DNA from: Anthoceros angustus
Taxonomy: Eukaryota; Plantae; Anthocerotophyta
Direction of reading: 5' to 3'
Assembly: GCA_010909165.1 (NCBI GenBank)
Contig: VJWM01000328.1
Span: forward strand, 2,466-66,465
Length of the DNA stretch: 64,000 nt
Shown piece by piece: positions 33,444 through 57,593 of the stretch; the stretch's first letter is position 1, and every line of letters begins with the position of its first letter. The position numbers and the translations under genes are program-made. A model generated the notes under the pieces. It searched no databases. It saw only the letters and a list, made by a program, of their open reading frames with translations, and was not told where the DNA came from.

Positions 33444-33688
33444 AACAAGGTCTCCTAAGAGTGGGAGACGGCTCCTCGTCTCTGGTTTTGAGGGGGTGAA
33501 ATTTGAGACCTGGAAACAAAAAAGCTTGAATTTCATAATTTGCAGATTTTTTTAAAAAAATTGCATGATAAAGATGTGACTTTAAGAATGAAACCATGCA
33601 TTTCAATGGTTTTAAGGTAATAAGACCTTCACATGGTCTACACTCCTCCAAGTTCTCATGAATTTCGCCAATTCTTTAAGATGATACA

Positions 33689-34575
33689 TGCAATTTATAG
33701 GCCGCACAAAATGGATATTAAAAAGGTCCACAAAATGAGTTTAAGGGTCCGTGGTGACCCGAGAAAAAAGCGGCGCATTCTTATGCTTGTATGACCCGGA
33801 CATCCTGAATGTCGAATGGTATGAATCCATTTTAGTCGTGCAGCCCGAGGTTGCACTACCGAAATTGGATGAAATCTCAGAACTTCATACCGCTGGCCTT
33901 TCGGACACACACCGTGCGGCAATCTATTTACAATTGCGGGTTCAATGCGGTCGTACCATCGTGACATCGTCCTTTACATGCATATGATGAATGCATTCAT
34001 CATGTCGCGACTAATCACCGCGAAGGCTTTCCACCTAGCAGACCATGGCCGTGTTCGGACCGAATTTCTTATAGCAATGCATTTCGCTATTCGTTGGTCC
34101 GGTATAAGCGCCCGCCATGGTCGATGCGATTTGCAATTTATAGGCACAAAAATGGATATTAAAAAGGTCCACAAAAATGAGTTTAAGGGTCCGTGGTGAC
34201 CCGAGAAAAAAGCGGCGCACATTATCAGCTTGTATGACCCGGACATCCGGTGAATGTGCGAATGGTATGAATCCATTTTAGGTAGTGCAGCCCGAGGTTG
34301 CACCACAGAATTGGATGAAATCTCAGAACTTCATACCGCTGGCCTTTCGGACACACATGCGGCAATCTATTTACAATTGCGGGTTCAATGCGGTCGCATT
34401 CCATCGTGACATCGTCCCTTTACATGCATATGATGAATGCATTCATCATGTCGCGACTAATCACCGCAGGCTTTCCACCTAGCGACCCGTGGCCGTGTTC
34501 GGACCGAATTTCTTATAGCAATGCATTTCGCTATTCGTTGGTGCAGTATAAGCGCCCATGATATGCGATTTGCAA
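33689..34575. repeat. Tandem duplication of ~445 bp in the left arm of element A
   Basis: Copies start at TGCAATT (~33689 and ~34133); the same 7-mer recurs at the end. Confidence 0.9.
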
Positions 34576-34749
34576 TTCGATAAGGTCTCGGCCATGACAC
34601 TTCACGCACATGGACGAAGCTCGGAATCGGGTGCCACTACCGGCCTTCCCTACGCCTCAGTCTCGCAGGGGGGCCAACTCATGCACACCAATGCGTCGGC
34701 CCGTGACGTGCAGTGCCTGGGAAATGGCGATTGGGGCGGCGTGACGTAG

Positions 34750-37700
34750 TTCTGTCAATCCCCTTTTCCTGGGTGTTCGATTGAAGGATATGCATGAGGA
34801 TGCTCATTGATGCAATGTTGTTCAGGCGCCGACCATGTTTCTCCCTTGCCCGAGCAGTCATCGTGAACAAAAAATGGTTCTGCAAGCCGAGCTTGGATCA
34901 ACTGGACACAATGGACACCGAACAGCAGCCTTTATCACCGGCTGTCCGGTGCACAGACATTTATGCACGCATAAGTTGTCTCAAAGCTGTTTGGAGTCCA
35001 ACACAAAAGCAACGTTAACCGTCTGTGATTTCCGCCCTAACAACTCTCTCCCAATCCCAGTTCGGATGCTACAAGTTTGTTTTGGCTGTCGCGGAAGTTG
35101 TCCGGAGAGTCAATCGTGCCATCATACTTCTCGGCGTCTCAAGGATGGACCTCGATCCATCGCCCCCAATGTTGCAAGAAAAGCCTCTTCTGCAGCCATC
35201 TCGCCAATGTGCGTCTTTCTCACTAACCTCCTCGCAGCCGACGGATGTCCTACAACACCGATCAGTGGATCGACATACGCCTCAATTGTGCATCGCGCCT
35301 TGCTGCCCGACGCCGGCACAACACCGGCCCTCGGCTGCGGCGGTGTGTTCACCATGGGCTCTTTCTTTGCGTCTTGGGTGCTGCATACCCGTCATCTCCC
35401 ACCTCCTCCTCCTCGCTTGGCGGTTGTCCATCGTATTGAGCCGCAAACCCATGAATTGCACTACTGCAGGATCGTCTCGAAATGACATTGCGGCGGACTT
35501 GTTGCTACCATAGCGCACAACCATCTAGGATCCACTCGCCTTCCATTGTGTATGCACTCAATCAACTTCCTCAACAATCTAATGGGCTTGGTAGGAAACC
35601 ACCCTATCATCTGGTGTTGTAACATAGCTTATGTTCCAACCTTCTCGGAAAGCAAGTTGTCAACCCTCTGTAGTCATTCATAACATCGGTGATGCCGAGG
35701 AGAAATCTTGAGGCGGACAATCACCTTTAAGGAGCTGCGCGTGGTGATGTAATCACGCATCATCTGACTTATCATGGAGGTGCCGTCACATTAGTTTTGT
35801 GCGAGCGGGGCGTGACACCACCTTTACATCGCAAGCAAAACTTCACGAACCATGGACATATCATCGTGGTGAATGGAATACCGACTCGAAAAACCTCGAG
35901 CGTTGTGATGCCACGGAATGTCATTATGATCTTCTCAAATTCACGAGTGAACGCGTGTCATACTCCCTAGAGTTCGCATCCAAATTCAACCCGGGGCAAG
36001 TCCAATGTCATGGCAAGCGGACGGGGTTCTAGAAGCTGGGCCATCTCGCGATGTTGCCACATACTATACCTACCTGCAGTTCTCCGGCGTCATCACGAAA
36101 GTCACTTTTTTTGATCGGAGGCCTCAACAATTGTCATCATCGCCATTATCCTCCAAGCTTTGGCTTTCAAAACATGTTCCTTGAAATTGTCGAGTGCACT
36201 CCACTCGAGAGGCATTGGCCGCACGCAATGGCAAAGTTCCAAGCCGGGGCGTGGAAACAAACCATGCGCAAACAAGCATATTTCTGTTTAGTACATATCA
36301 CATGCCGGGTGGTGCTGTCCATGTCACTTACCATATTTTTGAATGCCGGTTGAAAGCTGCTGATCTGCTCCACCATGCTGTATTGAGGGTATCGATCCCT
36401 AACCTGCTGGAAAGTCTCACAATTCAGGTTCTTCGCAAGGGTGATGTGAATGAGGTTCAATTTTTTGGCCTTCTCCACCCACTCTTGCATTTGCTTCAAG
36501 CTCATTTCTCCAGCCAAAACCTTCATGCATGCCGTCTTCAAATTGTTGTTGCCTGCTGCTGAGTGCTCGATACCCTGAAAACACTTCCACACTCTCACAG
36601 GAACATCCGATTCCTTCACATCGATGACCACAAGATCTCTCGCGGCTGCAGATTTCCTCGACTTCCTTGTAGCCTTGCTGTTTATTTGCTAGTGCTCGGG
36701 CAGCATCTATCCGCCGGTAGTTGCATTCCCACTTCTCAAAATCTCGTCCACATACCTCCACACTTCTTCGTCAACTTTAGCCACACAATAATCCAGGTCC
36801 TATTGTCCACCAGCGGTGATCGCACCTTGGGGCCATGCTTGGCGCATCCCACTTGGGGATCCCCTGTCGTGCATACACATCTAGCTTCCAATCCACGTCA
36901 CACTTCAAACCCTTGACCTCCGAGACAACTCACTTGATGTAACGCACACGGTCCATGAAGGTAAATGTCTTCTGGCGTCGCTATGGTGTTGTGGTCCGTG
37001 GCTACGATCCTCATCTCGTCCTCGGTGAGTCCGAGCACATATGCATCCATCCACTTGTACTCTTCCACCGGTGGAGTCAGATGGGGGGGACCTTGCGGAA
37101 GGAATGGTTTCCCCTAAGGCGAAAAAATGTAATCCCCCCATCCACCTTCGAACGTGAAATTCTCTTGTAGCACATTGTGGCGGATCCACAACCACAACCA
37201 TGGGCAACACACCACCACCCGGGACAATGCTTCATCTTTTGCATCAAAGCCTCTACCCATGCGAGATCCAACTTCCTCACCACAGCTGCGACACAATTCC
37301 TCGAAGTGCAACACTTGATTGGCAGCAGTAGACTCCACACTCTCTTCATTGCGATACCGTCCCTTTCCACGTCCGGCTTGCATACGCTTTGATGGCAAGC
37401 ACATCATCGTCTGTAGCCACCGCTATCCTTGGCAATCTCCACAAACACGGGAAGCGGTTCATCCTCCTCCTCCGACTCTTGCTCCCAATTGCAATTGCAA
37501 GCTTCTCCCGTTTGCCCTTGCCTTCTTGGCTTTGCCACTACATGAACTGCGCCTTCTCATCGATTGGTTTGCCATCTCCGGCTCCTCCCTCGCCGCCTTT
37601 GATGCATTCCCCACGGCGGCGACTGCTGCACCCTCCTGCGATCCGGGACAAGCCACGAAGACCGGTGAGCAATCATGCGATGGGGCGGGACCTCGAGGTC

Positions 37701-39390
37701 ATGCTCGCCGTCATTAGCCTCGCAGTCTCCTTCCAGTGAGCCATCTTCACCGTCTTGATCATCTTCGTCCTCCTCGGCGGGTAGGGCGCCATCACATAGT
37801 CCTCTGTGTCCTCACCGTCGTTCTCCATATCCTCGTCATGGGTCAAGCTAGCTTCCTTCAGCCTTGAAGAATCACAAAGTCTGTTGGCAGTCAAAACCCG
37901 GACGTCCGGTGCAGACGCATCGGCTCGGAGCGGAAGCCGGCGATCTTTGGATCATTTGCAATTGGTTGTATTGCGGACCTCGAGCGGATGCGGTGCTAGG
38001 ATGTTTCCCCACCATGGCATTGCGGGGATGCTTCCCTCGGATGCCGCTCGGTTGCATCGGTGAGGCTGGTTGCTTTCCTGCAGATGCCCTTGTGAAATGA
38101 TTCCCCATCTTGAAGATGCTTCCGGATGCTCTTTCTGTTGTTGCTTCTGGCGGATGCCTTCTTGGTGTGCTTTGGCGGATGCACCGCTTGGATGCTTTGA
38201 ATTCCGTCAAGTCGATGTGTCCGCTTTCACCGGCCGATGATCCACTACCACCCACTGCGGCGGGTGGGTTTACACCTGAATCCGAGTACCGGCACGCCTA
38301 ACGCCTTCTAAACATACTTGGTGCATTACCTTGTGGAAAACTCATGCCCATCATTTTTTAGCCCTGCGGCGATTCTTCACGGGCGCTTCCATGGCAAGCC
38401 ACGATGTCAAAATTCTTGATCACGGTGAGTAGACTCGGACGACATTGGGGTCGAGTTTGAGGGTTTGTCTTGATGTACACAAAAATGACATACCCTTGGT
38501 CATCCTTCTCCACAGTGCGTGAACAAAAGCAGCACCAAGACATGAGGGCTTTGAACGGCTTGTCCAGCACCCAAGGTAATGCAATACCAACCGTCTGCGG
38601 GGCGTTGTTGCCTGATCCAACTCGCCGAGATATATCGAAGGAGAGTTGTCCTGAAGCATCATTCCGATCATGTCGATGTCGCTTGCTTGTAAGGACTTTG
38701 GAAAGTTGCTCTAGTTGGGGGCGTTGTCGTGGGGCGCGGGTTCACGGTGTCGGGTATGCATCTTGATGCCTTGGATCGGTGGTCACGGTCTCCATGGGGC
38801 CCTAGAATCAAAGGCTGCCGCTGGTCCGTTTTCTCCCCGCTAGCGCTCCATCGGGTTTGGCGCCTTTGCTCGCTTCTGTTTGAGGGCCCATCTGCCAAAC
38901 AACCCATTGTAGCAAGGAGATCATTGGACATATTAGCAAGTATAACATGAGGGAAGCACATAATTGGCAAGCATTAAGGATTGTCAAAAACGGCGGCGCA
39001 CATCAGCGGGACCGGTATGTTCTTCGTGAAACACGGATGGCCTGTGAGGTTGGAGCGGTGTTGACCTTCAATGAAACCACGCAGAATTGAAAGACACTCC
39101 GATTCCGCGGTCGAATCGAGGGATAAGAGACAAATCATCGCTTTGTCCCTCGCTCAATATATCCACCATCTCGGCTCGAGTTGGCGCCAAAATCGGTCTT
39201 CCAGCGGTGGAGGAAGGTAGTATGACTATGTGGGGTCACGATGTGCAAGAGCGACTCACGGCATCGTCGGTGACATTCGCAATTCCACTCCATGGGAAAT
39301 CATCCAATGCACGATCGTCGCCAAGTTTAGCCTTCATTCGCGCTCCAAAGGCACATCGCAAAACAAGTAGTAAAGCATATTTATGAGAAT
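34750..39390 (-). pseudogene. Element A cargo gene: acidic N-terminus, ParB-like domain and beta-class N4C/N6A DNA methyltransferase-like domain (frameshifted)
   Basis: VRKLDLAWVEALMQKM and GNHS (~37100-37280); motif IV-like LDLP (35991-36005); YQ(K)PIRLLRKLIE-AYTMEGEWILDGCA-YGS (35500-35600), read across single-base frameshifts. Boundaries approximate. Confidence 0.75.
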
Positions 39391-41250
39391 ATTCCATGTT
39401 TTGCCATCTCCGGCTCCTCCCTCGCCGCCTTTGATGCATTCCCCAGGCGGCGGCTGCACACCCTCCTGCGATCCGGGACAAGCCACGAAGACCGGTGAGC
39501 AATCATGCGATGGGGGCAGGACCTCGAGGTCATGCTCATCGTCATTAGCCTCGCAGTCTCCTTCCCGCCATCTTCACCGTCTTGATCATCTTCGTCCTCC
39601 TCGGGTAGGGCGCCATCCATAGTCCTGTGTCCTCATGTTCTCCATATCCTCGTCATACCGGTCAAGCTAGCCCTTGAAGAATCACAAAGTCTGTTGGCAG
39701 TCAAAACCCGGACGTCGGTGCACACGATCGGCTCGGGGCAGCGGAAACCGGCATGTCTCTGGATCATTTGCAATTGGTTGTATTGCGGACCTCGAGCGGA
39801 TGCGGTGCTAGGATGTTTCCCCACCATGGCATTGCAGGATGCTTCCCTCCAGATGCACTGCTCGGTTGCATCCCAAGCTGGGTTGCTTTCCTGTAGATGC
39901 CCTTGTGAAATGATTTCCGCCATCTTCAAGATGCTTCCCGGCTGATCACGATGCTGTTGTTGCTTCTGGCGGATGCTGCTGGTGTTAGGCGGATGCACCG
40001 CTTGGATGCTTTGAATTCCGTCAAGTCGATGTGCCGTCTATCGCCTTTCGGCCGATGATCCACTACCACCCACTGCGGCGACGGGTGGGTTTACACCTGA
40101 ATCCGAGTACCCGGCACGCCTAACGCCTTCTAAACATACTTGGTGCATTACCTTGTGGAAAACTCATGCCCATCATTTTTCGCAAGCCTGCGGCGATTCT
40201 TCACGCTTTCCGTGGCAAGCCGATGTCAAAATTCTTGATCACGGTGAGTAGACTCGGACGACATTGGGGTCGAGTTTGAGCTGGTTTGTCTTGATGTACA
40301 CAAAAATGACATACCCTTGGTCATCCTTCTCCAATTGCGTGAACAAAAGCACCAAGACATGAGGGCTTTGAACGGCTTGTCCAGCACCCAAGATGCAATA
40401 CCAACCGTCTGCGGGGCGTTGTTGCCTGATCCAACTCCGCCGGATATATCGAAAGGAGAGTTGTCACAGCATCATTCCGATCATGTCGATGTCGCTTGCT
40501 TGTAAGGACTTTGGAAAGTTGCTCTAGTTGGGGACGTTGTCGTGGGGCGCGGGTTCACGGTGTCGGGTATGCATCTTGATGCCTTCGGATCGGTGGTCAC
40601 GTCTCCATGGGGCCCTGCGAATCAAAGGCACCGCTGGTCCGTTTTCTCCCCGCTAGCGCTCCATCGGGTTTGGCGCCTTTGCTCCGCTTCCTGTTTTGAG
40701 GGCCCATCTGTGCCAAACAACCCATTGTAGCAAGGAGATCATTGGACATATTAGCAAGTATAACATGAGGGAAGCACATAATTGACTGCAAGCATTAAGG
40801 ATTGTCGAAACAGTGCGGCGCACATCAACAACCGGGACCCTGGTATGTTCTTCGTGAAACACCGGATGGCCTGTGAGGTTGGAGCAGTGTTGACCTTCAA
40901 TGAAACCACGCAGCGAATTCGAAAGACACTCCGATTCCGGATATCGAGGGATAAGAGACAAATCATCGCTTTGTCCCTCTGCTCAATATATCCACCATCT
41001 CAGCTCAGGTTGGCGCCAAAATCGGTCTTCCCGCGCAGTGGAGGAAGGTAGTATGACTATGTGGGGTCACGATGTGCAAGAGTCAACTCCTGGCATCGTC
41101 AGCAGCAATTACTGCAATTCCACTCCCTGCATGGGAAATCATCCAATGCCTGATCGTCGCCAAGTTTAGCCTTCATTCGCCGCTCCAAAGGCACATCTGG
41201 CAAAACAAGTAGTAAAGCATATTTATGAGAATATTCCATGTTTTGCCATC
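37568..41250. repeat. Tandem duplication of ~1.84 kb
   Basis: Copies start at TTTGCCATC (37568 and 39400); the same 9-mer at 41242 closes copy 2. Confidence 0.93.
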
Positions 41251-41412
41251 GGCTAAACATGTTTCGCCTTTTGCATAACCTCTGGCTCCTCGATCCTTGC
41301 AATCTGTTAAGGCAATTAACGAGACTTGACGCCGGATCAGAGCATTGACATCCGCGTCAAGCTGTCATAATTGATTACGGAGGCGGGCCACGAGGCTGGA
41401 TACAAGTTGAAC

Positions 41413-44400
41413 ATGTCTAGCTACGCGTCTTCACCTTTCGAGCACATTGTGAGCAGCACTTTCTTCTACTCTTTGGTAGCGCAATGGCGGTGACCTCGGT
41501 AGCGGAGGAAGAGTTCTTTGATTTGGTGAGCAGCGGACTAGTGGCTGGCGATGAAGATCTCGGGCATGTGTCCGAGTCGACATCGTGGACTTGGCGGCGC
41601 GCTTGATGTGGACAACCAAGGGAACCGCGGGACGTCCGGTGAATGTCCTGTGTCAGAAGAACGCTGGGCACACATCGGACTTGGATGACACCGCCTGCGG
41701 TGGTATAGCGACAGTCATAGCGATGGAGACTTGTTTTGTTCGATCCTGGTGGAACGAGCAGCGGCCGATCGGCAAGAAATTGCAGACCATGTGGATCGGT
41801 GGCTCGTGCCGCCGTGAACAGGCGGCGCCTCGATATCCCTCCCGATATCCGCAATCTTGGCCGCCTCGGCGACTGCGCCGGTACCATTACCCACAGCTTG
41901 TTCAAGTCGGGTGCGAAGAAGTTGGCGAGGATGTTTTGCCCAGATCCAAATCCGGGCCAAGCGGGTGTGTCACCGGCAGCGAGAGAGACAAGGTGGCGCC
42001 TACAGCGGATCCAGTGTGGGTCGCGAGTATTTTCAGCGTTGTGTTTCACCGCAGCCCTGGCCAAAGACGGAATCGGAAGCAGTGTTCTTTGAGTCGCCGG
42101 TTGTGGTGAGAAGGTCCATGGCATTGTTGATTTTGGTTTGGAGTTTGCGGGAGTGGGTGAAGGAGGTTACGGGAGTGGAAGGCGGGGAGACCAAATGTGG
42201 TACGAGATCCGATTGCACCTTTGTTTGGAGAGGAGGCGAGCAGGCCTCTGGCGGTGCAATCTTGCTCCTGCTAATCCCAAGTCGAGGGGTTGGAGTTGCG
42301 TCTATGGATGGGGTTATGTGTTCCACCAAGAACCATCTTGCAAGGAATAAGGTGGACAATGTTTTGGCGAAACCTGTAGTCGGCGAGCTATGTGCAGAAC
42401 TGAGGAGGCGTCTTGTGGGAGAAAGTGCATAGGAAAGTTGGGACATGGCGGGCTAAAGCTTTGTCGGCGTGTCGATGAGTAAGGGGAGCAGCATTTGCGG
42501 GACAGATTGATGTGATCGAAGATGTGGCGGTGTCGTGGCCGGATGGTTGAACAAGCTACCACACGGAAAGGTTTCGGTGTGTGTGAGGGCATTTTGCCGT
42601 GTGTTTTGCATTGGGGCACTCGGTATCAGATATGACCGTCTGAAGGGACGAGGTTTGCCAGTGAGCCTGGCGGAAAAATACCTACCGTATGGTCTACAGT
42701 GTAATGTGGATGGATTTGTTTTCAAAGGAAATGTGGAAAGGCTACCCAATAGGGAAGTCTTTAACCACTGATACATTCACGAAGGAGGAGATTTATATTG
42801 AGTATGCTAGACAACGAGGCAAGAGCGATTACCGCACATGTATGTTACGACTATTTACGCAAGTTGTGGATCGGCGGTGGCTCGTGCCGCCGTGAAGAGA
42901 GGCGGCGCTCGATATCCCTCCCGATATCCGCAATCTTGGCCGCCTCGGCACTGCGCCGGTACCATTACCGGCTTGTTCAAGTCACGGTGCGAAGAAGTTG
43001 GCGAGGATGTTTTGCCCGGATCCAAATCCGGGCCAAGCGGGTGTGTCTGGCGCGCGAGAGGAGACAAGGTGGCGCCTACAGCGGATCCAGTGTGGGTCGC
43101 AGGAGTATTTTCAAGCGTTGTGTTTCACCGCAGCCCTGGCAGAATACGGAATCGGAAGCAGTGTTCTTTGAGTCGGTGGTGAGAAGGTCCATGGCATTGT
43201 TGATTTTGGTTTGGAGTTTGCGGGAGTGGGTGAAGGAGGTTACGGGAGTGGAAGGCGGGGAGACCAAATGTGGTACGAGATCCGATTGCACTGTTTGGAG
43301 AGGAGGCGAGCAGGCCTCCTGGCGTGCAATCCTCCCTGCTAATCCCAAGTCGAGGGGTTGGAGTTGCGTCTATGGATGGGGTTATGTGTTCCACCAAGAA
43401 CCATGCAAGGAATAAGGTGGACAATGTTTTGGCGGCGTAGTCGGCGAGCTATGTGCGGACTGAGGAGGCGGTCTTTGGGAGAAAGTGCATAGGAAAGTTG
43501 GGACATGGCGGGCTAAAGCTTTGTCGGCGTGTCGATGAGTAAGGGGCAAACATTGCGGGACAGATTGATGTGATCGATGACGACGGTGTCGTGGCCGGAT
43601 GGTTGAACAAGCTACCACACGGAAAGGTTTCGGTGTGTGTGAGGGCATTTTGCCGTGTTTTGCATTGGGGCACTCCGGTATCGGAATGCTCGGACAGTCT
43701 GAGAAGGGACGAGGTTTGCCCAGCCAGCCGGAAAAATACCTACCGTATGGTCTGTGTAATGTGGATGGATTTGTTTTCAAAGGAAATGTGGAAAGGCTAC
43801 CCAATAGGGAAGTCTTTAACCTGCCTGATACATTCACGAAGGAGGAGATTTATATTGAGTATGCTAGACAACAGGCAAGAGCGATTACCGCACATGTATG
43901 TTACTATTTCTGCAAGTTGTGGATACGGCACTTCAGGTCTGTTAAAATACCAAGATCCAACCGCTTCTCCGTCTGTGCTATCTGTGAGAAGTTAAAAGCT
44001 AAAATAAAAAACGCCGGGAACGACAGAGAGCAAGGTACAACCGAGAATCCCTCTACCTTATCACTGTAAGCACCGGATGTCCGGTGATTGGATGGTGTCT
44101 TGGTAGAGTGTCGGGCGCAAACCCTATGGCCTTAGGAGACTTAGGGTTTGGCACGTGATGACTTTGGGCCAGGTGCAGAACACTTGCGTTGTTGCGTGCG
44201 TGTCTTGATGGTGGCCTTGTATGTGCGAGATAGAAAGCAGAGAACTCCTCAATTATCACGGGATCAACAACGGATGGAGCGGAGGAAAATGGCGCATCGC
44301 GGAAGTGTATGGCTCAACCGACCAAGTACATAGGGATTGCGATAGATGGTATGGACCAGAAAAAAGCGAGTTGCCTCATTTCCGTAGAGTGCCCAAAGAT

Positions 44401-45095
44401 GTGGATAGTCTGCCCTAATCTCTACATCCATGTGGTTGGGGTTTTGGTGTTCAACAAATTCATGCGCACTTATGTGTACCGAGCTACCCCAATATTGAAT
44501 GATCCTAAGCACAATTCGTAATCCAGCATGTGATTAATTTGTGGGAGGGCAATTGCAAACTCTTTACTGCAGATGGACAATACGGTCGAACAAGAACCAG
44601 GAGGTGTTGGCGTATTGCGATGTTGGTGTCCATTGGTATTTTTAAGAAGGTTAAAGTGGGGTTTCTCATTGTTGGCCATACCCATGATCGATTGATCAAA
44701 TGTTTTCCGTTTTACATTGTCTTGAACTTGAAAGAGGCATACACATTGCGGAGTTGATTGCTTGCTTGGAGAGGGCTTATACTCCTCGCGAAGGTCCATC
44801 TCATGAAGGAGGTGCGATTTTAAGCAATATTTATAAGCCGGAGGTTCTACCTTGTCTGATCTACACAACAGTTTTCAACATCAATTTAAGGTCACTCGGG
44901 AGGAGTTGCCTAGTCATGAGTTTGTGGCGGTCTTTGAGGTGCAAGCAATTTTCCACGGCACTGGACCCGGATGGTGGTGTTCAGGGATGGAGTGCGGAGA
45001 GGAGATTGTTGCGGCTCCACTGAGCCTGCATGGAGGGCTTAAGGGCAAGGAGCAAAAGGAGCATCCACATGTATGTCCTGACAGGGCCTGTCAGG
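41413..45095 (+). pseudogene. Element A DDE transposase (Sola-like/DUF7869-type), 5' part
   Basis: ERLPNREVFN-LPDTFTKEEIY, VKIPRSNRFSVCAICE, IAIDGMDQKK, VGFLIVGHTHD, HQFKVT; probable intron ~44066-44178; start approximate. Confidence 0.8.
41790..43922. repeat. Tandem duplication of ~1.07 kb within the element A transposase
   Basis: Copies start at TGTGGAT (~41790 and ~42866); the motif recurs at ~43918. Confidence 0.9.
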
Positions 45096-45960: not shown

Positions 45961-48900
45961 TTACTTTCTTATCGATGCATATAGATGTTTCCTTGAGTTC
46001 AACTTGAACCCATAATAGACAATAACCGTTTTGCGAACGAAGATTGTCTGGATGTTTGGAGGTCTTGAGTTTTTTCCCCCTTTTCCTTTCGATGTTGGTG
46101 CTTCGTCGCCATTCGTTCTACAGACGTATTCTCCAACATACTTGCCCTCGTAAGCATCTGTGTGCTCTGTTCTCCACCAATGCACACGTAAGAAAGGGTC
46201 TGCAGAGTTCAGGTGCACACTTAAAACCTTTGCAACCCAAAATGCTCATTATGAGTGTCTCCCTCGCAAGGAGTGACAATGAACATGCCTTTCAATCTCC
46301 ATGACATCCCCATTCATCCTTGCCACCTCCTCTTGCTGTAAGCTCCGGTGAGCTCCCAAATACATATCTCTGTGGTACTTCTCGAGTAATGCTTCGTCAA
46401 GAATAGCCTCGTCGCGACGTGCGGTGAGGACACAAGTACCTCACAAGTCCCGCCATACCATTTCCATTCGTTCGCAAGACTAGTCCAATGTTGTTGTCCA
46501 CAATAGTTGCGATCTCACTCGATCCTTCCGAATTCAATCCACCACTCCTCTTCATCCGCATTCAAATATGTTGGCAGCTTGAGCAAGCCCTTCCGTAGGT
46601 GGTCTACGCCGCATGCTGTGAGCCCACCTTCACTCCCTTTTGTCTTTTGCACGAAGGGCCATCAATGGTGCAGTCCAATAACCGGCCGAATCGCCGTTAA
46701 GAACTCCAAGCCATCTTGGTTTCCCACCGTGGAGAAGTAGAATCGCTTACAGATGATCAGAACTTCCGCCCTAACTGCTCTTCCTTGTAATTTTGAATTG
46801 ATCTTTGGAGCGAGGTTGTTCAAGCTTAACTGACTTTAAATTGGTGCCCCGGCTCCTTTCGCAAGCCGCCACATATGTTGAAGTCCGCACTTCTGATAAC
46901 CTTGACTGGGTTTGGTGTGTATGCCGTTCTCAATATATCCTCCATAGCCGGAGAGTACGAGCCTCCTTGTGCTTCGGATGCTTTGAAAAACATGAAAACA
47001 TCCGATCCACCGTCATGCTCCGACGAAGAAGCCCACCTTAACCTTTTGAAAATCGCAACTCTACTAGCATATTCGTAGGCAAATAGCAATTGATTCTTAT
47101 TCTCCGCACGTGTTGTCAAGCGCAAATACAACAACGATGGAAGAAGCCCTCGTAAGTGTGTATGACATCCCGTATGATCGAAATCGTCGGTTGCGTCATT
47201 GTGATTCGCATAGTGGAGATAAGCTCGCCTTGTGAGTATAATTATGGATCATACAACCCACAACATGAACCGTGATCTTGTTGTCCTCCTTCAAGTCTTT
47301 AGGCCACCGTAATATGCGGAGCGATGTTTTCTCGTCCATGCCATCAATTGATAATAATATGTATTTATGCTCACTATACCCTTTTGACCGATGCTTGACA
47401 TTTTCTTCCTTTCGTTCATAAGACGGACTCGATGGGAGTCCACTTGGTAAACATGCCCAACCACGGTAAGATCGATTAGAGCCAAGCTTGTCGTGTACAA
47501 GACGAACAAATCTACACCATCAATGACAACCATGAGATTAACATCAGATGCTAGAAAGCCGGGCCACGCAGCCGGCACAAGACGCTCAGAATCAGGGCCC
47601 ATTTCACGCGCTAAATATGGAGGCCACTCCTGTGCATAAACCACTTGTCGCTGACGATCTGAGAGGAATACCGCTGAGAAACATGGAGAGGCGGCCCAGG
47701 GAGAATGAATATTCCGTGATGCGCCCGGCCACCCTTTGGTAGGCAAGGCATGGGCTCATGGGTGGCGCGGCATGCCGCGCCCACCCGCCTGATGGAAGGG
47801 GCGCCGGCATGCCGGCGCCATGCTCTGATGGAAGGAGGCCGGCATGCCGGCGCCATGCCTGATGGAAGGAGGCCGCCGGCATGCCGGCGCCATGCGCCCA
47901 GAGGCGCGCCGCCGCCAGTGCGCTTGAGCCCAGAGCGCGGGCCACATTTCGTCACAGAATATGTGGCCATGCGCTGCGGTGTCGCGGGCGGGTGTGCGGG
48001 CGCCGGCATGCCGCCTGCATACATTGCACTATATTATGTACATGGCTTCCTTCTTGCCACCAAAGATCACACAAGCACATCCTACATTACCGAAAGATTG
48101 ATTGGGAGACATGAACATGGACCGACGTTTTGCTCGATTGCTTGTGTGTCGAATGTTATACTTGATCCAGTATAAGGAACATGTCGAGAACTTTGACTTG
48201 GGAATTTTCACGCGGAAAATTGCTCCCATAACGAGGAAGTACGCATGATATGTACCGCAAGCTGTTTTGTCCATCCCTGCTTGTATTGTGACCAAACTTC
48301 ATGCTTGGTAAAAGTATCGAGCAAGTTATAGACTTCAACATTCGCAACCTCTCGAGATGCAAGAAAGTCGCGTCCATCCACTCAATCGCACCAAGGCGTG
48401 CGTGGATTTTTGACATGGGTTTGGCTTGTTCTCCCCAAGGAGCATTACTCAGACTCGGTCTTCAATTCTTCATACCGCGGACTAATGCAATACATGCGTC
48501 AAGGCTTTCAAACAACATCTTAGTGGTGCGGTGCATGAGAAATGTCTGCACCTTCCCTTTGCACTAGCTTCTTTGTGCGGGCGAACAAGTGCCTCCAAGA
48601 ACCTCTGTTCTCCTCTTCCCGGATCCAAGAATCGACGCTCTTCTTGAAAGCGATTCTTTTGGCATAGGGAGGCATAGCCTCGTGCGGCATGGTTTCCGGA
48701 ATCTTCCAAGATGACATTCACTCTTCCTCGGACACCACCGCTCTCCGCTTTTGCAACATACTTGCCGAGGGGCACTGCTTGCATTGTCTCCGATGCGGCT
48801 TTGGGTGAAACGTTGGTCTTGTACATGTTCCAAATCCTTCTCCTTCATTGTTATCCATTGTACCCGCTATTTCCCGTGATGAGATAAGAGGCTGAAATTC

Positions 48901-49700
48901 CTCGTCATCACCTCTGTCTTCACACTGAACGCCACATCTTCCGGCATTCCCCTGTGCGCGCGGTGAGCCGACTATTGCCGAAGCAGAAGCACCCCCTTCA
49001 TCCTGACCATGATCGGTGAACAAGCCCCGTGCCGCGCGAGTTCTGCTTTCCAGCTGCCTCTTGCAGCCTCCTGGTCGACCCCGCGGACTTTTCTCCAATG
49101 CGCGAAAGAGGTTCACGTTTCTGAGTTCTTGGCACATAGCGGGCATCCGTTGATCTCCACCCGGACTGCGAGAGAAGCGGATGATCGGCCGGCAAGCCTT
49201 ATGATTAAGAAAGTAATGTCCTACCCGATCCCACCATCGTAAACATAACACCCAAGCACAAGACTACAAGACAAAGTCGCAGTCAAATAACACTCACTCA
49301 AAGGCAATGGCAGATGCAGTGGCAGGCATGTTGACATTGCATTCATTGGGTTCATCGGCGCTAGTCTTGCATGTTTGGCTTCTCTGCTTCTCATGTCCAT
49401 CGACCTAAGGAATTGAGGCTTAAACCTCGCAAATCGCATCTTCGGATCCCCGCGAAATGGAATTGGTGAGGAAGACTTAAGGAAGTAAGGATAGTCCAGA
49501 CGCGCCACAAACAGCAGTGCAAACACCTCCGCTTCATCGGTCTTTTGTGTCGCGGTGAGCATCTTCTCGGTCCCTTCAAAAGCACAAGAAGAGCACACAA
49601 CTAGTTCTATAGAATGGTGAAGATAGCAAACCACTATAAGGGCATGTCCAGCTTTGTCCACGCCACTCGTTTGACGCGCATAGGCCACCATGCACGGAGA
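45961..49700 (-). pseudogene. Element B DDE transposase (same family as element A)
   Basis: DTFTKHEVW, VKIPKSKFSTC, SIDGMDEK, ENKNQLLFAY, HQFKVS, EEEWW, WRTEHTDAYEGKY; start approximate. Confidence 0.8.
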
Positions 49701-49899
49701 ATGGCGGCGGTGCCTTAACTACATATTCATTGGCGTTCACCATCCTTTGTGCTACGCAAACGCAGTCATAATCTCATTACACCTAGGGTTTGCAGGAGCC
49801 GCTATTGCTATTTTTAAATATCGAATGTTACCAAGAACGCGGATTTGGCGCATTTCCACTAGATATGCCATGATGCGGGACCTAATTAGGGTGCCACGC

Positions 49900-52800
49900 C
49901 GTGGCAAGGCTGCTCTCCTTCCTCGGTGCGGTGAGCGTAAAACATACCCCTCTCGGCGCGCCTTTGCCCGTGCCAAGGATTGGTTGGGCGACACCTCGTG
50001 GAGCTCGAGCAAGCTGCCTTCAAGAGCAGGATCACCATTGGAGGAGACGGTTTGAGCACGCGAGGCATCGGAACGGACGCGGACGCCGATCGCGGCAACG
50101 TTGTTGTCATCTCTTCTTTGTGGGATTGCGGTTTCGTATGATTCTGTCGATTTCTCCATGTCTTTCTAGTTCGTGAGAAGACATCATCAGCCATGGCTAG
50201 TGGGAGGCGGCAAGAAGGACTGCAAGATGGGCCTTTGTTGGCCCCGGACCCGATGGAAAAGCCGCGCAAGCATCGCAAGACAAAACAGAAGAAGAGCGAC
50301 ACTTTGCCGTGAGAAGGTGGAGCGCGTGTGTCATCGGCACCTGGAGGATCAGTCGGAGGCAAAACCAGCAGTGCAATCGACCATGGTTCGGGAGGAGCCA
50401 GTCTCGGAAAGTCCGGATCGCTGGGTCTCAGGGCAGCAAGCTACGGAGCGGGACAAAAGCGGGCTGGCCAAACCACCTAGGGCAAAAGCTCCAGAACCAT
50501 TCCCTTCTCCTTACACATACGAGGAATCTATCATGATCCGGCACACAAGCAGTAGAAGAAACTAATGCTGGATGGTTTTTAACTAACTGGGAGCTGCAGA
50601 ACGAACTGGACTCCAATGCTGAAGTTGTGGATGTATGGACACGCGGGAGCCTTGCCGAATCAGAGGGCACGAGCAGGGTGGGTGGTGTGGGCAACAATTG
50701 ATATGGAGGAACAGGAGCCACAGTTCGAGATCCTATGCACTAGAAGGCCATATGAATTCAACACTCTTCCAGTAACAACAGAAGATTATAGTGTGTTTCT
50801 GAGTCAGCCAACTTCAATGCCCGCAAGTGTGAGCCGAGCCTTGTCTCGAAATTTCGAGCGGTGCGGTGAGAGTGTGAGTGCGACCCAACACAACCTTTTT
50901 TTAGCATTGCTTGTTGTTTCGAAATGGAGAAACGCTTCACCTTGCTGCTCTTTTCTCGATCTGGTTTGGTCTGCTCAGCCGAAGTGCAGCAGAAAACTAT
51001 GCGAAGCCATTACCTCCTCCATCAAAACACACAAAGTGGAGGTTTCATATCGGATAACGCGCCAAGGACTTGGTGTGTTTGCACAAGGAGAAATGGCATT
51101 TGTTGATGACGAAGAGGAGAATGAGTTTGGGCCATCGGATGAAGAAGATGGGCCAGTCCCGGATGTTTTGGGACATTCAGATGATGAGGCTTCGGGGCAT
51201 GACGGAGAAGGTCGAGGTGGGGAGGTCAGGATGGACCTCCCCGGGGCGTCAATGGATATGATTTCTATCCCATATATCCCAGTAGAGGAAGAGGGAGATG
51301 GAGGACGCCGGCATGCCGGCGCCCTTACTTCGGTATCCCAAGGTCGGAGACACCCTAGCACGTTGGGTGGTGTGGAAGCCCGTTCTGAGGGAAGAGTGGA
51401 CAGACGGCAGGGCGCCGGCATGCCGCGCCCGCTGGGCACATGGGAAGAGGCGCCGGCATGCGCGCCGACATGGGGAAGGGGCCGGCATGCCGCCTGGCAC
51501 ATGGGAAGAAGGGGCCGGCATGCGCGCCCGCCGCTTACAGGGGGCATGCCGGCCGCCCCGACGCAGCGCCGGCATGCGCGCCCGTCGACCATTCTGAGGG
51601 CGCCGCGCCGCGAGGACGATGGGGAAGAAGGGAGCCGCCGGCATGCCGGCGCCCACCCTTCCAAGGAGGGGGTCCATACTCCCAGCGACTCCTCACCACT
51701 TCACAAAAGGCAGAAAACAGGCAAAGGGATGGCAGGAGTAACAGAACACAATCTGGAGTAGTCGAGGGGACGCAAAGTCGGAAGACAGGCAAGCGCGGCA
51801 CCAGACCATCCGACAGCAATGAGATTCAAACTCTTCATGTGGAAACCGACAGTGAGCGCTTGGCGGCGTCGCACATGGAGGAAGACTATCTGACGAATGT
51901 TCGACAGTCTGCATACTCCAAAAAGGTTGTTCCCGAAACTGTTTTGGTAAAACTGGAAAATTTGCGCCCAGCTTCCTTCCTGACCCCTGATGCCCAGATC
52001 CGGAAAGTTGATGAGGCATGGGCCAATTATCTTGCTCGCGTCATTGCTAAGGGGAGGATTGAAGAAGGAGTGCTTCCTCTTCTATGTATGATTGATCCTG
52101 CAGTGCGAGGACATTGAATTGATTGGGAAAGGTTTAGGCGAAGAAGTATGTCATGGGCGTATTAGGTGGAAACCATACCCACGGACCATGAGGCACCTTG
52201 CGGATATCTCACCGGGAAGGCGATTGGATCGAAGCCCATGTGTATTGTGGCCTAACTGTCTCGAGATGAGGATTGCCACCGATCACAACCGGATGGCGGA
52301 CAAGCGAAGAAGATGAATTTTATTGAGCGGTTCGGTATCTCGGGATGAGTTGCGAGATAGCTAAGCGGGATCATGTCATCATGTCCATGAACTGGAAATT
52401 CAATCTCTACAAGGTGCTTGGTTTGATTGAAGACGATGAAGGCCGAAGATGAGCAAGACAAGCGCAATACAAGGTGGACAACAACCCATATCATGCATTG
52501 CAAAACTAGAGGGTAAGGTCCGGGAGAATGTGGACAAAATTTTTCAAGTGGGAAGCGGTGAGCTACCCGAGCGAAGCATGTCGCAGAGAACAAGCAAAAG
52601 AGCAAAGGTAAGCGGAAGGCAACACGAGACAAAACAAGTTGATGGAGTTTTGTGAAGCCCAAAGAGATGCGAGGGAAGCCGTGGCGAAGCTTTCAAGGAA
52701 TCCCTTCGGAGTCGGGACAGATGTTGATAAGTGCCACGGAGAAAGTCGACCGCCTCTTGGACCTGAATCTAATGTCAAGGAAGTTACACTCGGAAGAAAT

Positions 52801-54195
52801 TTCACGTCATTCGTGGCAATGGCAAAACATCCGGGTTGTGACTCATTCAAATGGTGAGACAAGAATACCCTCAACACTCGACGGTTATTGCAAGATTTCA
52901 AACCGCATTTGAGGGCAAGGTAACCATATTTCCTTCCATTCCGTGCGATTGTGAGGCGCGCCGCCCCCGCTCGCCTTCCTCCTCACGCTAACCCATGATG
53001 TTTGCCATTCCATGCACAAGTGAAAGATGTTGAGGACCTAAAGAAATTACGATGATTTTCAAGCCTTTATTCTCGAGGTCCATACATGGAAGGGACTTGA
53101 AAATGAGCAAAAGAGCGCTAGTGATATGGACATGGAGGAAGGGCTTCAATCGTTCACGGTGCCAAAAGCAGAGGACATTGTCAAGTACGGTCATTTCTAG
53201 AGATGCGGCAGATATGAGGGGTTTCTAAGGGTCCAAGTACACCACGATGGTCATGGACATGGAGGATTCAACAGAGGTAAACATGATGTGAAGTTAGACC
53301 ACTTTCAATTGGGAAAAATATTTCACCTGCTCCATGACATGACCATGCCAGAGATGAGAATGATAGTGATGCATGGTGTTGAAGAGCGGCATGTTGTGAG
53401 GGAGGCCATGCGAAAGTGGTGCAGGGAGGAGGGTTGGTGTCTTTGTATGGGACAAGCGAACATGCACAACGACTTGGGTGGGTATGACACTATGGAGTAC
53501 ATCACGATAGGATGGGGGTTAACATCGAGTCAAAGGTCAAAAATCGCATGATCCCTACTAACATCCATGGGTCTTTCAATAATGGGCGGTCATTGGCCAC
53601 CCTACAATGGTGAAGAAGTTGTTGTACACATCATTGGACAAGCTGGTGTGCACTTACCAAAGGCCTTTGGCTTTGATGATGAAGCTCATCAAAAGTTTCT
53701 CGAAGGAGGGACTGGATTTTGGATGTTTGTCTTTGGTAGCGGTCAACAACATTGGCGGCTTTGCTCATGGGCGAATCGCATTGCAATCGAGGTGGACAAG
53801 AGGTGCGCAGAGTTCATTCCCGGAGAATCCATGGGTATGAAGTTCTCCCCACGGTAAGAGGAGTTGAATCATGAGCCACATCGGGACCCACCCGCCTGGG
53901 CAAAAGAGGTTAGTTTGTCCGAGAAGGATGGGTCACATCGCGAGTTGTGCGTTTGGCCGCCAGAATGAAGGAGAAGTCCGGCGACTCCTAGGCGATGGGC
54001 AGGACACGGGTATGGTCAACACGACTCAAAGATCGGGCACTGGAGATGACCATGCCTCAAGACAATGCCATGGAGGAAATTGACAACTTTGAGGACACGA
54101 ACGCTCGACTAAAAGGACTTGAAGTTGTGATGGATGGCGATGTCTGGACAATTTCCTCAGGAAACTCAAACGGCATGGAAGACCATTGTACTTAG
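49900..54195 (+). pseudogene. Element B cargo gene: N-terminal domain, acidic and palindrome-rich linker, ParB-like domain and amino-methyltransferase-like domain
   Basis: QIRKVDEAWANYLAR, VLPLLCMIDP, GVLGGNHT (52162-52179), EMRIATDHN; YQRPLALMMKLIKSFSKEG-DWILD-FGSG...AIEVDK (53655-53800). Boundaries approximate. Confidence 0.78.
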
Positions 54196-54547
54196 GTTCC
54201 ATCAATCCCGCCTCTTATGACATAGACATGTTTGGAACATTATAATATGAGGGTAGTCGCCGCATACCCCCCCCCCTTCTTTCCTTCTCGCATAATACAT
54301 GAAAAAGCTGCTTTGGGGTTCTCCATATCACGTCGTAGTTAAAGTACCGCTTGTTATGCGCGGCCGCATGCCCGGACCTTATCCACCATTACCCTGCGTT
54401 TAAAAACACGTAATCAATCATTCAACCAAGGCTCTGCCTTACATCGCTCGGACACACACACGAAACGGCATGGTTATCACATATTTTCCTAAGCGGCTTC
54501 TTTTCGGGTGGAAGCGGCTTTGTATATTGAGCCGCTTCAAATATTAT

Positions 54548-55400
54548 GCTGTTAGGGCTATGGCTGGAGTGGAAGACAATAGACAGCGGTTAAGAACTTC
54601 CACAGAAATCTTCAATGCGTTGCAGCTATCTTGGTGGGATGGTTTTTGGGAGGAGCAGTTGGCAATAGCGGGTTTAGTAGCGTCAGGTCATCTTCGTCCA
54701 TTGGAAATGGCATGGACATGGTATAACCGGGAAGCGCATGCTCAAGAACCTCCCGTGATGTTTCCTACAAGTAGTGGTGGATGCAAAGACTAGCAAGACG
54801 GTTTGGACAGACCGAGAGATTTATCGGTGCCTCATAGGATCATGAAGCGGAACGGTTGGAACAACAAGCCGAGGATCTTATCGAGATCCAAGCGGCATGA
54901 TGATTGCGGTCCAGCCGCAGATGACCACGAGGCGGCCTTTACGGCTAGGCAAGGTTGTGGAGGTGGACCATGAAGTCGCCGACCCCAAGCACAAATCCAC
55001 CGGTGGCGCACGTAAACCCTAATGCACTTGAGGGTAGGTACTGAGGAAGCGAGTACCCCACCAGCAGTCACAGGAAAGGTAGGCGCGAATCCTTTGAAGA
55101 AACATGTCCAAGCCATCAAGCTTTTGGAGACCACGATCATGGGTTACGATTTTGTGTTGACGAGGAGCAAGGACTTTAAGCAAAAACACCATGGATATGT
55201 TGAAGAGGAAGGTCTTTGAGTTCTGGCGAGCCTAGTGAGGAAGCGGTATGGCTGCCTCCTGGATGGTGAAACCGTGATGAGCGGATTGATTGGGCACAGA
55301 CAACATTGAATCCTCATGCATCTCTGATTATTTGGTGGACTTGATGGCGGTGTGGACTCCGAGGAGCCGGATCCTAACCCACCTAGAATTAATTTTGATG
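54548..55400 (+). pseudogene. Element A transposase, 3' part (after element B)
   Basis: AVRAMAG...LSWWDGFWEEQLAIA aligns with ALRAKD...EEEWWTDLRNDQVEIA of element C; end approximate. Confidence 0.65.
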
Positions 55401-57593
55401 TTGGCTGAGAGAGAGCCGAGGTCATGAGCGATTTCCTAGTTATGTGAAGGTGGTTTGTTTTATTAGGATGTGTGCTCCTCTTTTGGAGTGTTGGCAAGCA
55501 GTGGTTGAGTCTCGTGGCTTCTCCAGGACATCCAGGCACTTGTAACACGTATCATGTTTTGTAAGGTTTCACACTTATCCGGTGTATGGCTGGTGTACCC
55601 CGTTTTTTTGCATGCGAGTACGTTCGACAATTGTATGTAGGATGGGAAGGAATGGGGAGACGAGCGAACCTCCTCCGGCCGTACTCCCCCTCTTGCCCCT
55701 CACTCTCCTTTTATTTTCCATCACGCTCAAGAACTGCGCTTCGGTTGGCGATCCCTGGCGGCTCTTGAGTGCCCAGGGGTGAAGCGGGCGTGAGTGGCCT
55801 TGGGTGGCCGGCAGTGGTGCGTGTTGGTTGAGGGCACCATTTGCGAGGCGCTTATCGGGAGATTGGAAGCTGAGAGGCTTCGCCTGCCGGTGCAGTGTGG
55901 CGCCCGCCCGCTTGCTGCTTACACCTGGCTGGTGCAACAAGCAGCTGCTGCTACTAACCACGGACTTGTGGCACCACCCGCCTTTATGCAGGCTAGTTCT
56001 CTGATTGCGATGAGAACGAGGCGGCGGCTACCACCACGGTGACATCTGACATCGCAGTCAAGAGGGCTAGGAGGAAGACCTCTCGGGCTGGGCCTCAGGT
56101 CCAACACGCGAGGCAATGCTTTTGTTAGGCGATCCGGGCTTCGTGGGCACCCATTTTCCTCACCCCAAACTGACTGTTGGTTCCGGAAGGGAGGTGGGTG
56201 TGAGGTGGCCTTAAGGGAGCCGCTAGGGGTGTGGACCCTTCCAGAGGGATGAGGGTGGAAAGCCAAGGATATATAACCAGGACCTCTCACTTGCCGGGAG
56301 GAGGTGAAGGCAAAGTGAGCTCTGAAGATTCGTAGACCATATTTGGCGGTGAGGAGATCGGGAGTTGTCTCTGGAGGTTGGATGCGAAGGCGTATGGGCG
56401 CTGAGAAGGAGGGAGGAGTTAGCTCGTGATGGTCGCAGCGGCACTGACCCAAAAAGGCTTGGCGGCCAGTGGAGGGAGCGGCCAAGTGAAGGCGAGGCAG
56501 TGAGGATGGCAAGTATGGTTTACGGCCTTACGAGATTCTTATATGGCCGCAGTGTTTTCCATCCTTCTTTGTTGCTTGTGTGTTCTGCGGATATTTGATG
56601 GTGTTGATCAGTGCTAAATGGCACATCTGGTTTGAGTGCCGCTAGTGTTGGTTTCTTGTTCGATGGTGCACATTGGTGTACGAAATTATGCAACGAGACT
56701 AGCCTAGGAATGAGCACTATTGGTTTTGGTTTCCTATAGCAGGATGCTCACTATCGAATAGTGCTTTTGTTGAATCCTTTACACACACTTTGGTCTTTGA
56801 CGGGTACATCGTTTAAAGCATGGTCAATATGGGCATTGTGTGGCTGGTGCTCACCGGACATCCGGGTTTTGGCCAACTGCTTTTCTCGCCTTGTCCCCTG
56901 CTTCATTGCTCATGACAAAGACTTGCGGTGTTTATCCCTTTTATAAGTAAATCACTGCTAGGGTCTGCCTAGTCTAGTGTTCGTTTTAAGCTCGCCTTGT
57001 GTCGTGTATTTTGGATGGCAAATGCGAGAAGGCGATTAGTTAGTTTACATTTGGCTAAATTATACATCTAATTCACCACTTGGATACCAAATGACATGTG
57101 TTGATGCATTTGTTGTATTATGTATAGTGACATGTAGAGACATATTGAACTTGAACTTTCACGTTGCTACATATTTAAAGACACCGTGGGATGTCCGACA
57201 TGAGGGGCATGTGAAGGAAATGAAATGTATCCACAACATTAGTCTCGTCGACTTTGGCCCTTAGTACATATATTCAAAAGCGTCACAAACTTGGCGATTT
57301 TGAAAGACTAACCGATTTTGGAAAAGTGTCCTTGAAAGTGCTGAAAACGCTGGTATTTTCAAACTTGATCCAACCGAGGACCATTATTTGCAAGATCAAA
57401 TGGCATGATAAAGCTAGAAATGGTGTTATGAAAAACCCTGGGTTATCTGCGATGTGTGTTTTTTGACCCTTGTGTCTGGAAAAACCCACGAAATCACGAT
57501 TTGATTTGATTTGATTTCAAATGTAAAATTTGGTCATTTCGACCTCTGTCTCTAAAAAGAGGGGTGTGTCTCCAGGTCTTAGGAGACCTTGTT

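Follow-up and report, generated by a model that had tools for sequence, protein, structure and literature searches.

A 24-kb stretch of the genome of Anthoceros angustus (Anthocerotophyta) raises the question of whether it is one giant DNA transposon carrying, as cargo, a gene that joins a ParB-like domain to an amino-methyltransferase. The stretch lies at positions 33444-57593 of a window of 64,000 nucleotides (contig VJWM01000328.1 of assembly GCA_010909165.1, positions 2,466 to 66,465 of the forward strand; coordinates below are those of the window unless a locus is named). The original prediction, made from the sequence alone, held it to be a single Sola1-like element with exact terminal inverted repeats (TIRs) and a 4-bp target site duplication (TSD), equipped with its own epigenetic writer. 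The analysis presented here points to another arrangement: the span is probably a nest of cut-and-paste transposons of one lineage, each pairing a transposase of the DUF7869 type with a conserved ParB-methylase gene, referred to below as the companion.

The analysis confirms a genuine insertion by cut-and-paste, bounded by TIRs and by a TSD of 4 bp. The 17-nt TIR (AACAAGGTCTCCTAAGA) occurs without mismatch at 33444-33460 (+) and 57577-57593 (-), and the only other match in the window at up to three mismatches is unrelated (0.16 expected by chance). Both arms contain the palindrome GTCTCC-N8-GGAGAC, as had been noted; the left TIR as a whole covers 33444-33469 (+; AACAAGGTCTCCTAAGAGTGGGAGAC, the first 17 nt being perfect) and the right one 57568-57593 (-). 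The tetranucleotide AATT stands directly outside both ends, at 33440-33443 and 57594-57597, and when it is counted in, the inverted arms are 30 nt long with 90 % identity. As AATT is itself palindromic, it could formally be assigned to the TIR, and both readings were therefore checked against the gag frame of the Copia retrotransposon in which the span lies. Joining the flanks with a single AATT gave an in-frame gag reading (...KTTFAELVGALLQEEVTEDAL / ...AAGVDLPKTTFAELVGALLQEEVTEDAL), the expected empty Copia site being GCAGAATTAGTG, while deletion of both AATT copies broke the frame. The gag remnant on the left (32812-33443, +) is recognized by PF14223 (E 3.6e-19), with PF13961 and PF14223 further upstream; the remnant on the right (57598-58019, +) stays in frame until a stop after 26 codons, and a stretch beyond this stop reads to us as zinc-knuckle-like. 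The pentamer GTCTC/GAGAC is present in four and three copies in the terminal 100 bp of the two ends, compared with 0.175 per 100 bp over the whole window. On its own, a 17-nt inverted pair without mismatch would be no rarity in 64 kb (about 0.1 expected, by estimate), but the TSD, the restored frame and the terminal pentamer enrichment together make a chance origin of the ends untenable.

Between these ends, one element turned out to be two. The DUF7869 transposase gene of the outer element A, here TpA, starts with an N-terminal part at 43761-45089 (+; PF25273, E 7.9e-8), in which IDGMDQ (44342-44359) and VGHTHD (44671-44688) are found and a frameshift directly follows GHTHD. Its reading ends at about 45089 and is picked up at about 54557 with ...GVEDNRQRL...LSWWDGFWEEQ..., followed by the C-terminal ...LGKVVEVDHE... 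(C-terminal part 54554-55220, +). The resumed part is collinear with two other transposases of the window, TpB and TpC, and with the intact transposase of the related locus L002, residues 275-483 of which match 54590-55183; collinearity with the intact relatives thus runs across the intervening block. This block, element B, measures about 9.46 kb (45090-54553) and has inverted ends of its own: a 23-nt core, ATATTTGAAGCGGCTCAATATAC, occurs at 45099 (+), at 54522 (-) and, with one mismatch, at 58223 (+), where none is expected by chance, and the first two copies form the arms of a 37-nt inverted repeat (45087-45123 / 54520-54556, 92 % identity; right end AACAGCATAATATTTGAAGCGGCTCAATATACAA). The split of TpA at B and the inverted ends of B mean that the "24-kb element" consists of element A, of about 14.7 kb (33444-45089 plus 54554-57593), and element B, inserted in the transposase gene of A. 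As a TSD of element B, the 9-bp pair CCTGTCAGG/GCTGTTAGG (seven of nine positions matching) and 4-bp options near an AACAG terminus were considered, but none of these candidates was convincing.

The third copy of the core belongs to element C, which starts at about 58213, some 600 bp past the right end of A, and stands downstream of TpC in the position and orientation that the first copy has relative to TpB. Element C lies outside the span (58213-62950; left end motif ATAATATTTGAAGCGGCTGAATATAC at 58220-58245), is truncated at about 62950-63100, and comprises TpC (59216-60411, -) and the N-terminus of a companion (61443-62200, +), its right part being missing. It also interrupts the Copia, has a B-type left end and is closest to the nested element B. 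TpB (45964-48381, -; IDGMDEK at about 47400) and TpC are 37-88 % identical block by block, whereas TpA shares about 30-38 % with TpB and about 34-41 % with TpC.

A single 24-kb giant with a captured cargo gene would account for the span being enclosed as a whole by one TSD and one pair of perfect TIRs. It is nevertheless very unlikely: the span holds two convergent transposase genes that are only 30-38 % identical, TpA is broken at 45090 and continues at 54554, the interrupting block has 37-nt inverted ends in common with element C, and a companion gene was found in every related genomic locus examined. The divergent transposase/companion pair that had been described is indeed there, in element A, but a second such pair, that of element B, is also inside the span, which thus holds two transposases and two companions. 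All four genes contain frameshifts or stops, and all copies in the window are pseudogenes.

The order of the two insertions is a separate matter. B might have entered A before A reached the Copia, in which case the 24-kb composite would have moved as a whole, mobilized in trans via the TIRs of A. Intact TIRs and TSD of A next to a B without recognizable TSD are what one would expect if B had inserted first. On the other hand, dating asks for more information than a TSD of 4 bp and a TIR of 17 nt contain, the composite is represented by a single copy, and with the transposase of A broken a helper would have been needed. We regard this order as possible but rather unlikely. Element A also contains three internal tandem duplications, 90-92 % identical and about 3.4 kb in total, which are later than the element itself: a subterminal one of 2 x ~445 bp (33689-34577, 92 %), each unit with the 20-nt palindrome ATGATGAATGCATTCATCAT, one of 2 x ~1.85 kb (37565-41250, 90 %) and one of 2 x ~1.08 kb (41797-43929, 92 %), into which the 5' end of TpA extends.

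The companion of element A, A1, lies at 35125-37451 (-) and is matched in tblastn by the companion of L002. It has several frameshifts and stops; its ParB-like region lies at 36846-37451, its middle domain at 36329-36796 and a remnant of methylase motif IV (TLDLPRVE) at 35775-36089, all on the minus strand. The E value of this match was 9e-27 for the ParB-like and adjacent region and 2e-33 for the middle domain, the latter with 70 % identity. The companion of element B, B1, covers 50616-53854 (+) and is frameshifted; it can be divided into an N-terminal region (50616-51758), a ParB-like region (51920-52449), a middle domain (52494-52937) and a methylase region (53201-53854). The last of these was matched by the PF01555 open reading frame (ORF) of L002 (tblastn, E 2e-6) and by a family hidden Markov model (HMM; E 1.2e-6). 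A1 and B1 are homologous, and each is divergent from the transposase of its own element.

Relatives were found through a HMMER search with a 113-residue exon of A1, which returned seven fragmentary proteins only, all from Logan assemblies, and led to L002. This 9.1-kb Logan contig holds a DUF7869 ORF of 619 amino acids (PF25273, 168.5 bits, E 1.7e-49), and, in divergent orientation, a companion gene. The last ORF of this companion matches the N6_N4_Mtase family PF01555 (E 5.4e-11; 43.3 bits, cut-off 26.7). By comparison, the TpA and TpC fragments score 32.6 and 56.3 bits (E 4.1e-15 for the latter) against PF25273, with a cut-off of 26. With the L002 transposase as query, 67 DUF7869 proteins were obtained, all annotated as hypothetical; the liverwort Riccia sorocarpa contributes many of them, and two ferns, Ceratopteris richardii and Adiantum, are also represented. 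With the 549-residue companion exon of L008, a locus from an ENA assembly close to fern sequences, about 30 further proteins were recovered, among them KP509_1Z236600 of Ceratopteris and Gb_10123 and Gb_03516 of Ginkgo, the latter two with PF01555.

In all six genomic loci with enough flanking sequence (L002; L006 of Ceratopteris, with a companion that lacks annotation; L007, L009 and L010 of Riccia; and L008), the companion is divergent from the transposase, and scanning with family HMMs detected in each of the six a ParB-like region together with motifs IV and I of the methylase. The HMMs were built from other members of the family, and L006, L009 and L010 had no part in model building. The companions are about 700-850 amino acids long and consist of an N-terminal region, a domain with a predicted ParB/sulfiredoxin fold, a middle domain and a beta-class (permuted) N6/N4 amino-methyltransferase. 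Presence of this gene in six of six related loci and in both A and B argues for a conserved second gene, and the idea of a cargo has to be given up. The full set of gene pair and TIRs was seen in Riccia, the gene pair only in Ceratopteris and the companion protein only in Ginkgo. The occurrence in liverworts, ferns, a gymnosperm and this window indicates that the lineage is apparently old.

The termini of the lineage have 5'-AACA followed by a short palindrome, with 4-bp TSDs. Element A starts with AACAAGGTCTCC..., the right end of B with AACAGCATAAT... and the B/C-type end with AACAGCATAATATTTGAAGCGGCT.... Riccia L009 has perfect 22-nt TIRs (AACAGCCGCTAAGATCAACCGG) with AAAG on both sides, and the terminus of Riccia L007 is AACAACATCCGCTACTTTAAAGCGGG; the other flank of L007 is a run of N, so that its TSD cannot be read. 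L007 is situated between two annotated Ion_trans/EF-hand channel genes (L007 1-3804 and 24013-24286), the run of N abutting the left TIR. The TIR of element A was absent from all fetched loci searched, no clear TIR was found in L008, and similarity at the DNA level between the window elements and the Logan loci is negligible. On its companion side L008 contains about 4.5 kb (L008 100-4650) of direct and inverted repeats of ~120-220 bp, which recalls the repeat arrays described beside accessory genes of the ParB type in red-algal Plavaka elements. The GC content of the window (about 50 %) is like that of the Logan loci, with 41 % in Riccia and 37 % in the fern-type loci.

An alignment of 15 diverse transposases revealed invariant D339, D417-N418, NKN, GHTH and D459 in the pattern D...DN...GHTHxxxD, from which we infer D339, D417 and D459 as a catalytic D-D-D triad; in the window copy these motifs are present but degraded. 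The transposase with IDGMDQ...VGHTHD is of the DUF7869 type; intact relatives include an 872-residue ORF in L008 and R1sor_019130 of Riccia. Sola elements have been described as having a DDD-type transposase, TIRs, 4-bp TSDs and a length mostly of 2-9 kb, with some larger than 15 kb; they are found in non-flowering plants, and Sola1 has been reported in the moss Physcomitrella (PMC10741241, PMC9033089). Compared by description only, the present lineage resembles Sola in its 4-bp TSD, D-D-D transposase, TIRs and non-flowering plant hosts. The two TSDs seen in the lineage are both of 4 bp; AATT fits the AWWT rule given for Sola1 in the original prediction, while AAAG of Riccia L009 falls outside it. 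The designation "Sola-like" is consistent with these features, with Sola1 as a candidate affiliation.

Could the ParB-methylase gene be a bacterial or phage contaminant, or the product of a chimeric assembly? The far end of the window does resemble Hyphomicrobiaceae sequence, and phages typically show this combination of domains (PMC12704722). The companion, however, has introns of the spliceosomal type (a GT donor follows ...FKNM), is enclosed by eukaryotic TIRs within a Copia element and adjoins DUF7869 genes in the chromosome-scale assemblies of Riccia and Ceratopteris. The best phage matches are also weak (E ~4e-4): tblastn against phages gave weak matches to the methylase only and no ParB match, and consequently no specific donor can be named. 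Contamination as the source of the gene is hardly credible. Concerning the introns, L001 1900-2240 and L005 2320-2410, on two Logan contigs of sister runs (SRR33208241, SRR33208242), represent the same companion gene, in which an intron after ...QLQFNG(V) is kept in the transcript L001 and gone from the transcript L005; the gene thus seems to be transcribed and spliced there. This copy carries stops and frameshifts.

The assignment of the ParB-like domain, which had been part of the original prediction, is borne out by relatives of the window genes. An AF2 model of the Ceratopteris relative P0098:205-354, made with alignment A3 (38 rows, including the A1 and B1 fragments of the window), had a pLDDT of 86 and a pTM of 0.80; a first run with a 13-row alignment had been discarded at a pLDDT of 48. 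When the model was compared with the PDB by Foldseek, the top 50 matches were all of the ParB/sulfiredoxin fold, with probabilities from 1.00 for the best to about 0.25 lower down and TMq values of 0.33-0.52. They included Noc, ParB of Myxococcus, Caulobacter and Bacillus, human and Arabidopsis sulfiredoxin, PadC, SbnI, KorB, SerK and the pNOB8 ParB-N domain. On the strength of this predicted structure, we accept a ParB/sulfiredoxin fold for the N-terminal domain of the companion.

For the methylase domain, precomputed PF01555 matches exist in companions of Riccia, the L008 assembly and Ginkgo, and the PF01555 ORF of L002 matches methylases of the beta class in the PDB (2zie, 8urk, N4CMT 8s9m/8s9n, MboIIA, CcrM, RsrI and DpnA). 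Motif I, the S-adenosylmethionine (SAM)-binding FxGxG, has its canonical form in the companions of Ginkgo (VLDPFSGSGTT) and of Riccia (VLDLCAGSGTT) and is weakened in L002 (V-DGCAGSGST) and degraded in the window, where B1 reads FVFGSGQQ across a frameshift and the motif is not recognizable in A1. Motif IV, canonically (D/N/S)PP(Y/F/W), is near-canonical ADIPYGF in Riccia and the fern-type L008, a form similar to DPPY as found in N6-adenine enzymes. The window belongs to a GC-rich clade in which motif IV is LDLPR(G/V): TLDLPRVE in A1 and LDLPRGL in L002 and L005; in B1 it is not recognizable. Two other candidates for motif IV in the window, HWPPY in B1 and RWPSF in A1, were rejected, HWPPY being out of frame and the alignment with L002 placing the motif at LDLPR. 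The sequence VVVVDPPQ, which looks like a DPPY motif, sits in the ParB-like domain.

Several observations weigh against the reading of a nest of elements that pair a transposase with a ParB-methylase gene. No clean TSD was found for element B in the several registers checked at its ends. Pfam detected nothing for ParB or methylase in the A1 and B1 fragments, and the match of the methylase part of A1 to the family HMM is marginal. For the ParB region, there was no Pfam ParBc match at E values up to 1 and no phmmer match to the PDB, nor did the 38-row profile match any PDB sequence, so that the assignment is one of predicted structure with a TM of ~0.5. The position of box II, the nucleotide-binding arginine motif GxxRxxA, reads GG(S/N/C)H(S/T)xxA(R/K) in the same alignment rather than GERR, and CTP binding is therefore not claimed; the motif is GCHR in sulfiredoxin and GERR in ParB, and the companion is closer to GCHR. 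Motif IV in A1, L002 and L005 is DLPR, without the aromatic residue. Finally, the bacterial end of the window shows that assembly quality is imperfect.

With DLPR instead of DIPY in motif IV, methylase activity is doubtful in the clade of the window; it is plausible, judging from the motifs, in the DIPY lineages. The original prediction of an element with its own epigenetic writer is doubtful for the window, the copies of which are dead pseudogenes in a clade with a non-canonical motif IV. In this clade, the companion could derive from a methylase that has lost catalysis and now binds DNA as a partner of the transposase, a role like that of the Myb-like protein in PIF/Harbinger. The contrast of DLPR in A1, L002 and L005 with DIPY in Riccia and the fern-type copy would fit this, as would the weakened motif I of L002 (V-DGCAGSGS). 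The SAM-binding GxGxG core is retained in L002 and L005, however, and all DLPR copies seen are from degraded or frameshifted genes. We consider a dead methylase a serious possibility, somewhat short of an even chance. Returning to the lineage at large, a stronger proposal would be that it is old, has the ParB-methylase as an obligate second gene and, in its DIPY/GxGxG forms, possesses an active, self-targeting writer of N6-methyladenine (6mA) or N4-methylcytosine (4mC) on element DNA. This can only be put forward tentatively. If true, plants would harbor a transposon-encoded DNA mark other than 5-methylcytosine (5mC), serving escape from silencing or the timing of transposition.

Palindromic repeats are candidate protein-binding sites in these elements. 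The sequence GCCGGCATGCCGGC occurs 14 times in the window, compared with 0.25 expected, and all copies are inside B (12) and C (2). In B they form a cluster of four (47803-48015) and one of eight (51307-51650), flanking the divergent gene pair on either side; those in C are at 62486-62635. Another palindrome, ACTGTATGCGCGCATACAGT, is present in at least five copies in each of two Riccia elements (L007 and L010).

In the favored reading, element A entered the Copia gag gene, leaving the 4-bp AATT duplication, and a diverged relative, B, is lodged inside the transposase gene of A, with another relative, C, 600 bp beyond. From these features, the following mechanism may be envisaged. The D-D-D transposase would bind the palindrome of the termini and the GTCTC pentamers of the subterminal regions, excise the element and integrate it with a 4-bp stagger. 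The companion, not having been lost by the lineage, may be a required or strongly favored partner in transposition. Its ParB-like domain may load it onto element DNA, possibly at the family-specific palindromic repeats. A methylase with DIPY and FxGxG may then mark the element DNA with 6mA or 4mC, and such a mark could blunt silencing by the host or link transposition to replication; in the DLPR clade the companion may serve only as a DNA-binding partner.

Comparable combinations are known from other systems. Fusions of ParB with an N6_N4 methylase (PF01555) are enriched in phages and prophages (PMC12704722). They share with the plant companion a ParB/sulfiredoxin-fold domain and a permuted beta-class amino-methylase, but the companion far exceeds them in length through its additional N-terminal and middle domains, has introns, goes undetected by the ParBc model of Pfam, is tied to a eukaryotic transposase instead of phage packaging or anti-restriction, and shows only weak similarity to phage methylases. 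Giant Plavaka, Mutator and Zisupton elements of red algae contain PAG2, a putative N6-adenine methylase, and PAG3, a ParB-2OG oxygenase, with tandem or inverted repeat arrays nearby (bioRxiv 10.1101/2025.02.11.637652). Like the fungal KDZ/Plavaka elements with TET/JBP, they exemplify large DNA transposons that stably carry accessory genes for chromatin or DNA modification. In PAG2/PAG3 the transposases belong to other superfamilies, and ParB and methylase are on two proteins with other partners (2OG oxygenase, SET); the hosts of these systems are red algae and fungi, as opposed to land plants.

The methylase N4CMT of bdelloid rotifers, stated in 2022 to have no eukaryotic homologs (PMC8885841), is likewise an amino-methylase of the bacterial type (PF01555) that resides in the genome of a eukaryote, and its structures 8s9m and 8s9n were among the matches listed above. 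It is a domesticated single-copy host gene with a chromodomain fusion that silences transposons, whereas here the transposon itself encodes the methylase. The VANC protein of VANDAL (MULE) elements is a second protein of a DNA transposon that is thought to affect the epigenetic state of its own copies; it is unrelated, causes loss of 5mC and writes no mark, and a functional analogy would be speculative.

No published description of this plant family was found in the literature covered, which leaves out most subscription journals and Repbase Reports, in line with what had been supposed. Nor was a paper on DUF7869 found, or a relevant one on PF01555/N6_N4_Mtase in plant transposons, and the family is absent from a survey of eukaryotic adenine methylases (PMC4738411) and from a ParB-fold survey. 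A land-plant transposon lineage pairing a transposase with a ParB-methylase gene is thus apparently undescribed, though additional ORFs may be mentioned in the founding account of Sola. Among eukaryotes, bacterial amino-methylases of the beta class count as exceptions; in this case one is encoded by a transposon and conserved together with the transposase in a liverwort and a fern. It thereby becomes testable whether plant transposons write 6mA or 4mC on themselves, countering silencing based on 5mC and H3K9, and for Riccia, Ceratopteris and Ginkgo genomes exist, often with native long-read data. For annotation, DUF7869 genes and "hypothetical" PF01555 genes in non-flowering plants are to be regarded as transposon genes, and apparent giant elements may be nests. 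Repeat libraries gain a TIR signature of 5'-AACA plus palindrome, with a 4-bp TSD.

The remaining features of the window lie outside the span. The last ~0.9 kb is syntenic with a Hyphomicrobiaceae genome, and the junction between eukaryotic and bacterial sequence, at about 62950-63100, truncates element C. An ORF resembling phage lysozyme (63100-63354, -) is 81 % identical at the amino acid level to proteins of Hyphomicrobiaceae metagenome-assembled genomes, and the next gene is collinear with OZ257134.1. An MCP-like N-terminus is present at 63495-63860 (+). The contig thus seems to be chimeric, contaminated or joined from separate records at that end, outside the A/B span. Upstream of the span, direct repeats of ~555 bp at 23858-24409 and 28914-29468, 93 % identical and 5.06 kb apart, resemble the long terminal repeats (LTRs) of a separate LTR retrotransposon, and just upstream of this pair there is a tandem array of about three units of ~500 bp (22200-23721, 85-91 % identical). 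Two short minus-strand frames, at 21887-21979 and 31000-31092, have the motif GH.FIP.A.ET.GAMG.DF..F.K.CAKAY in common with 42-55 % identity and are probably remnants of another repeat family.

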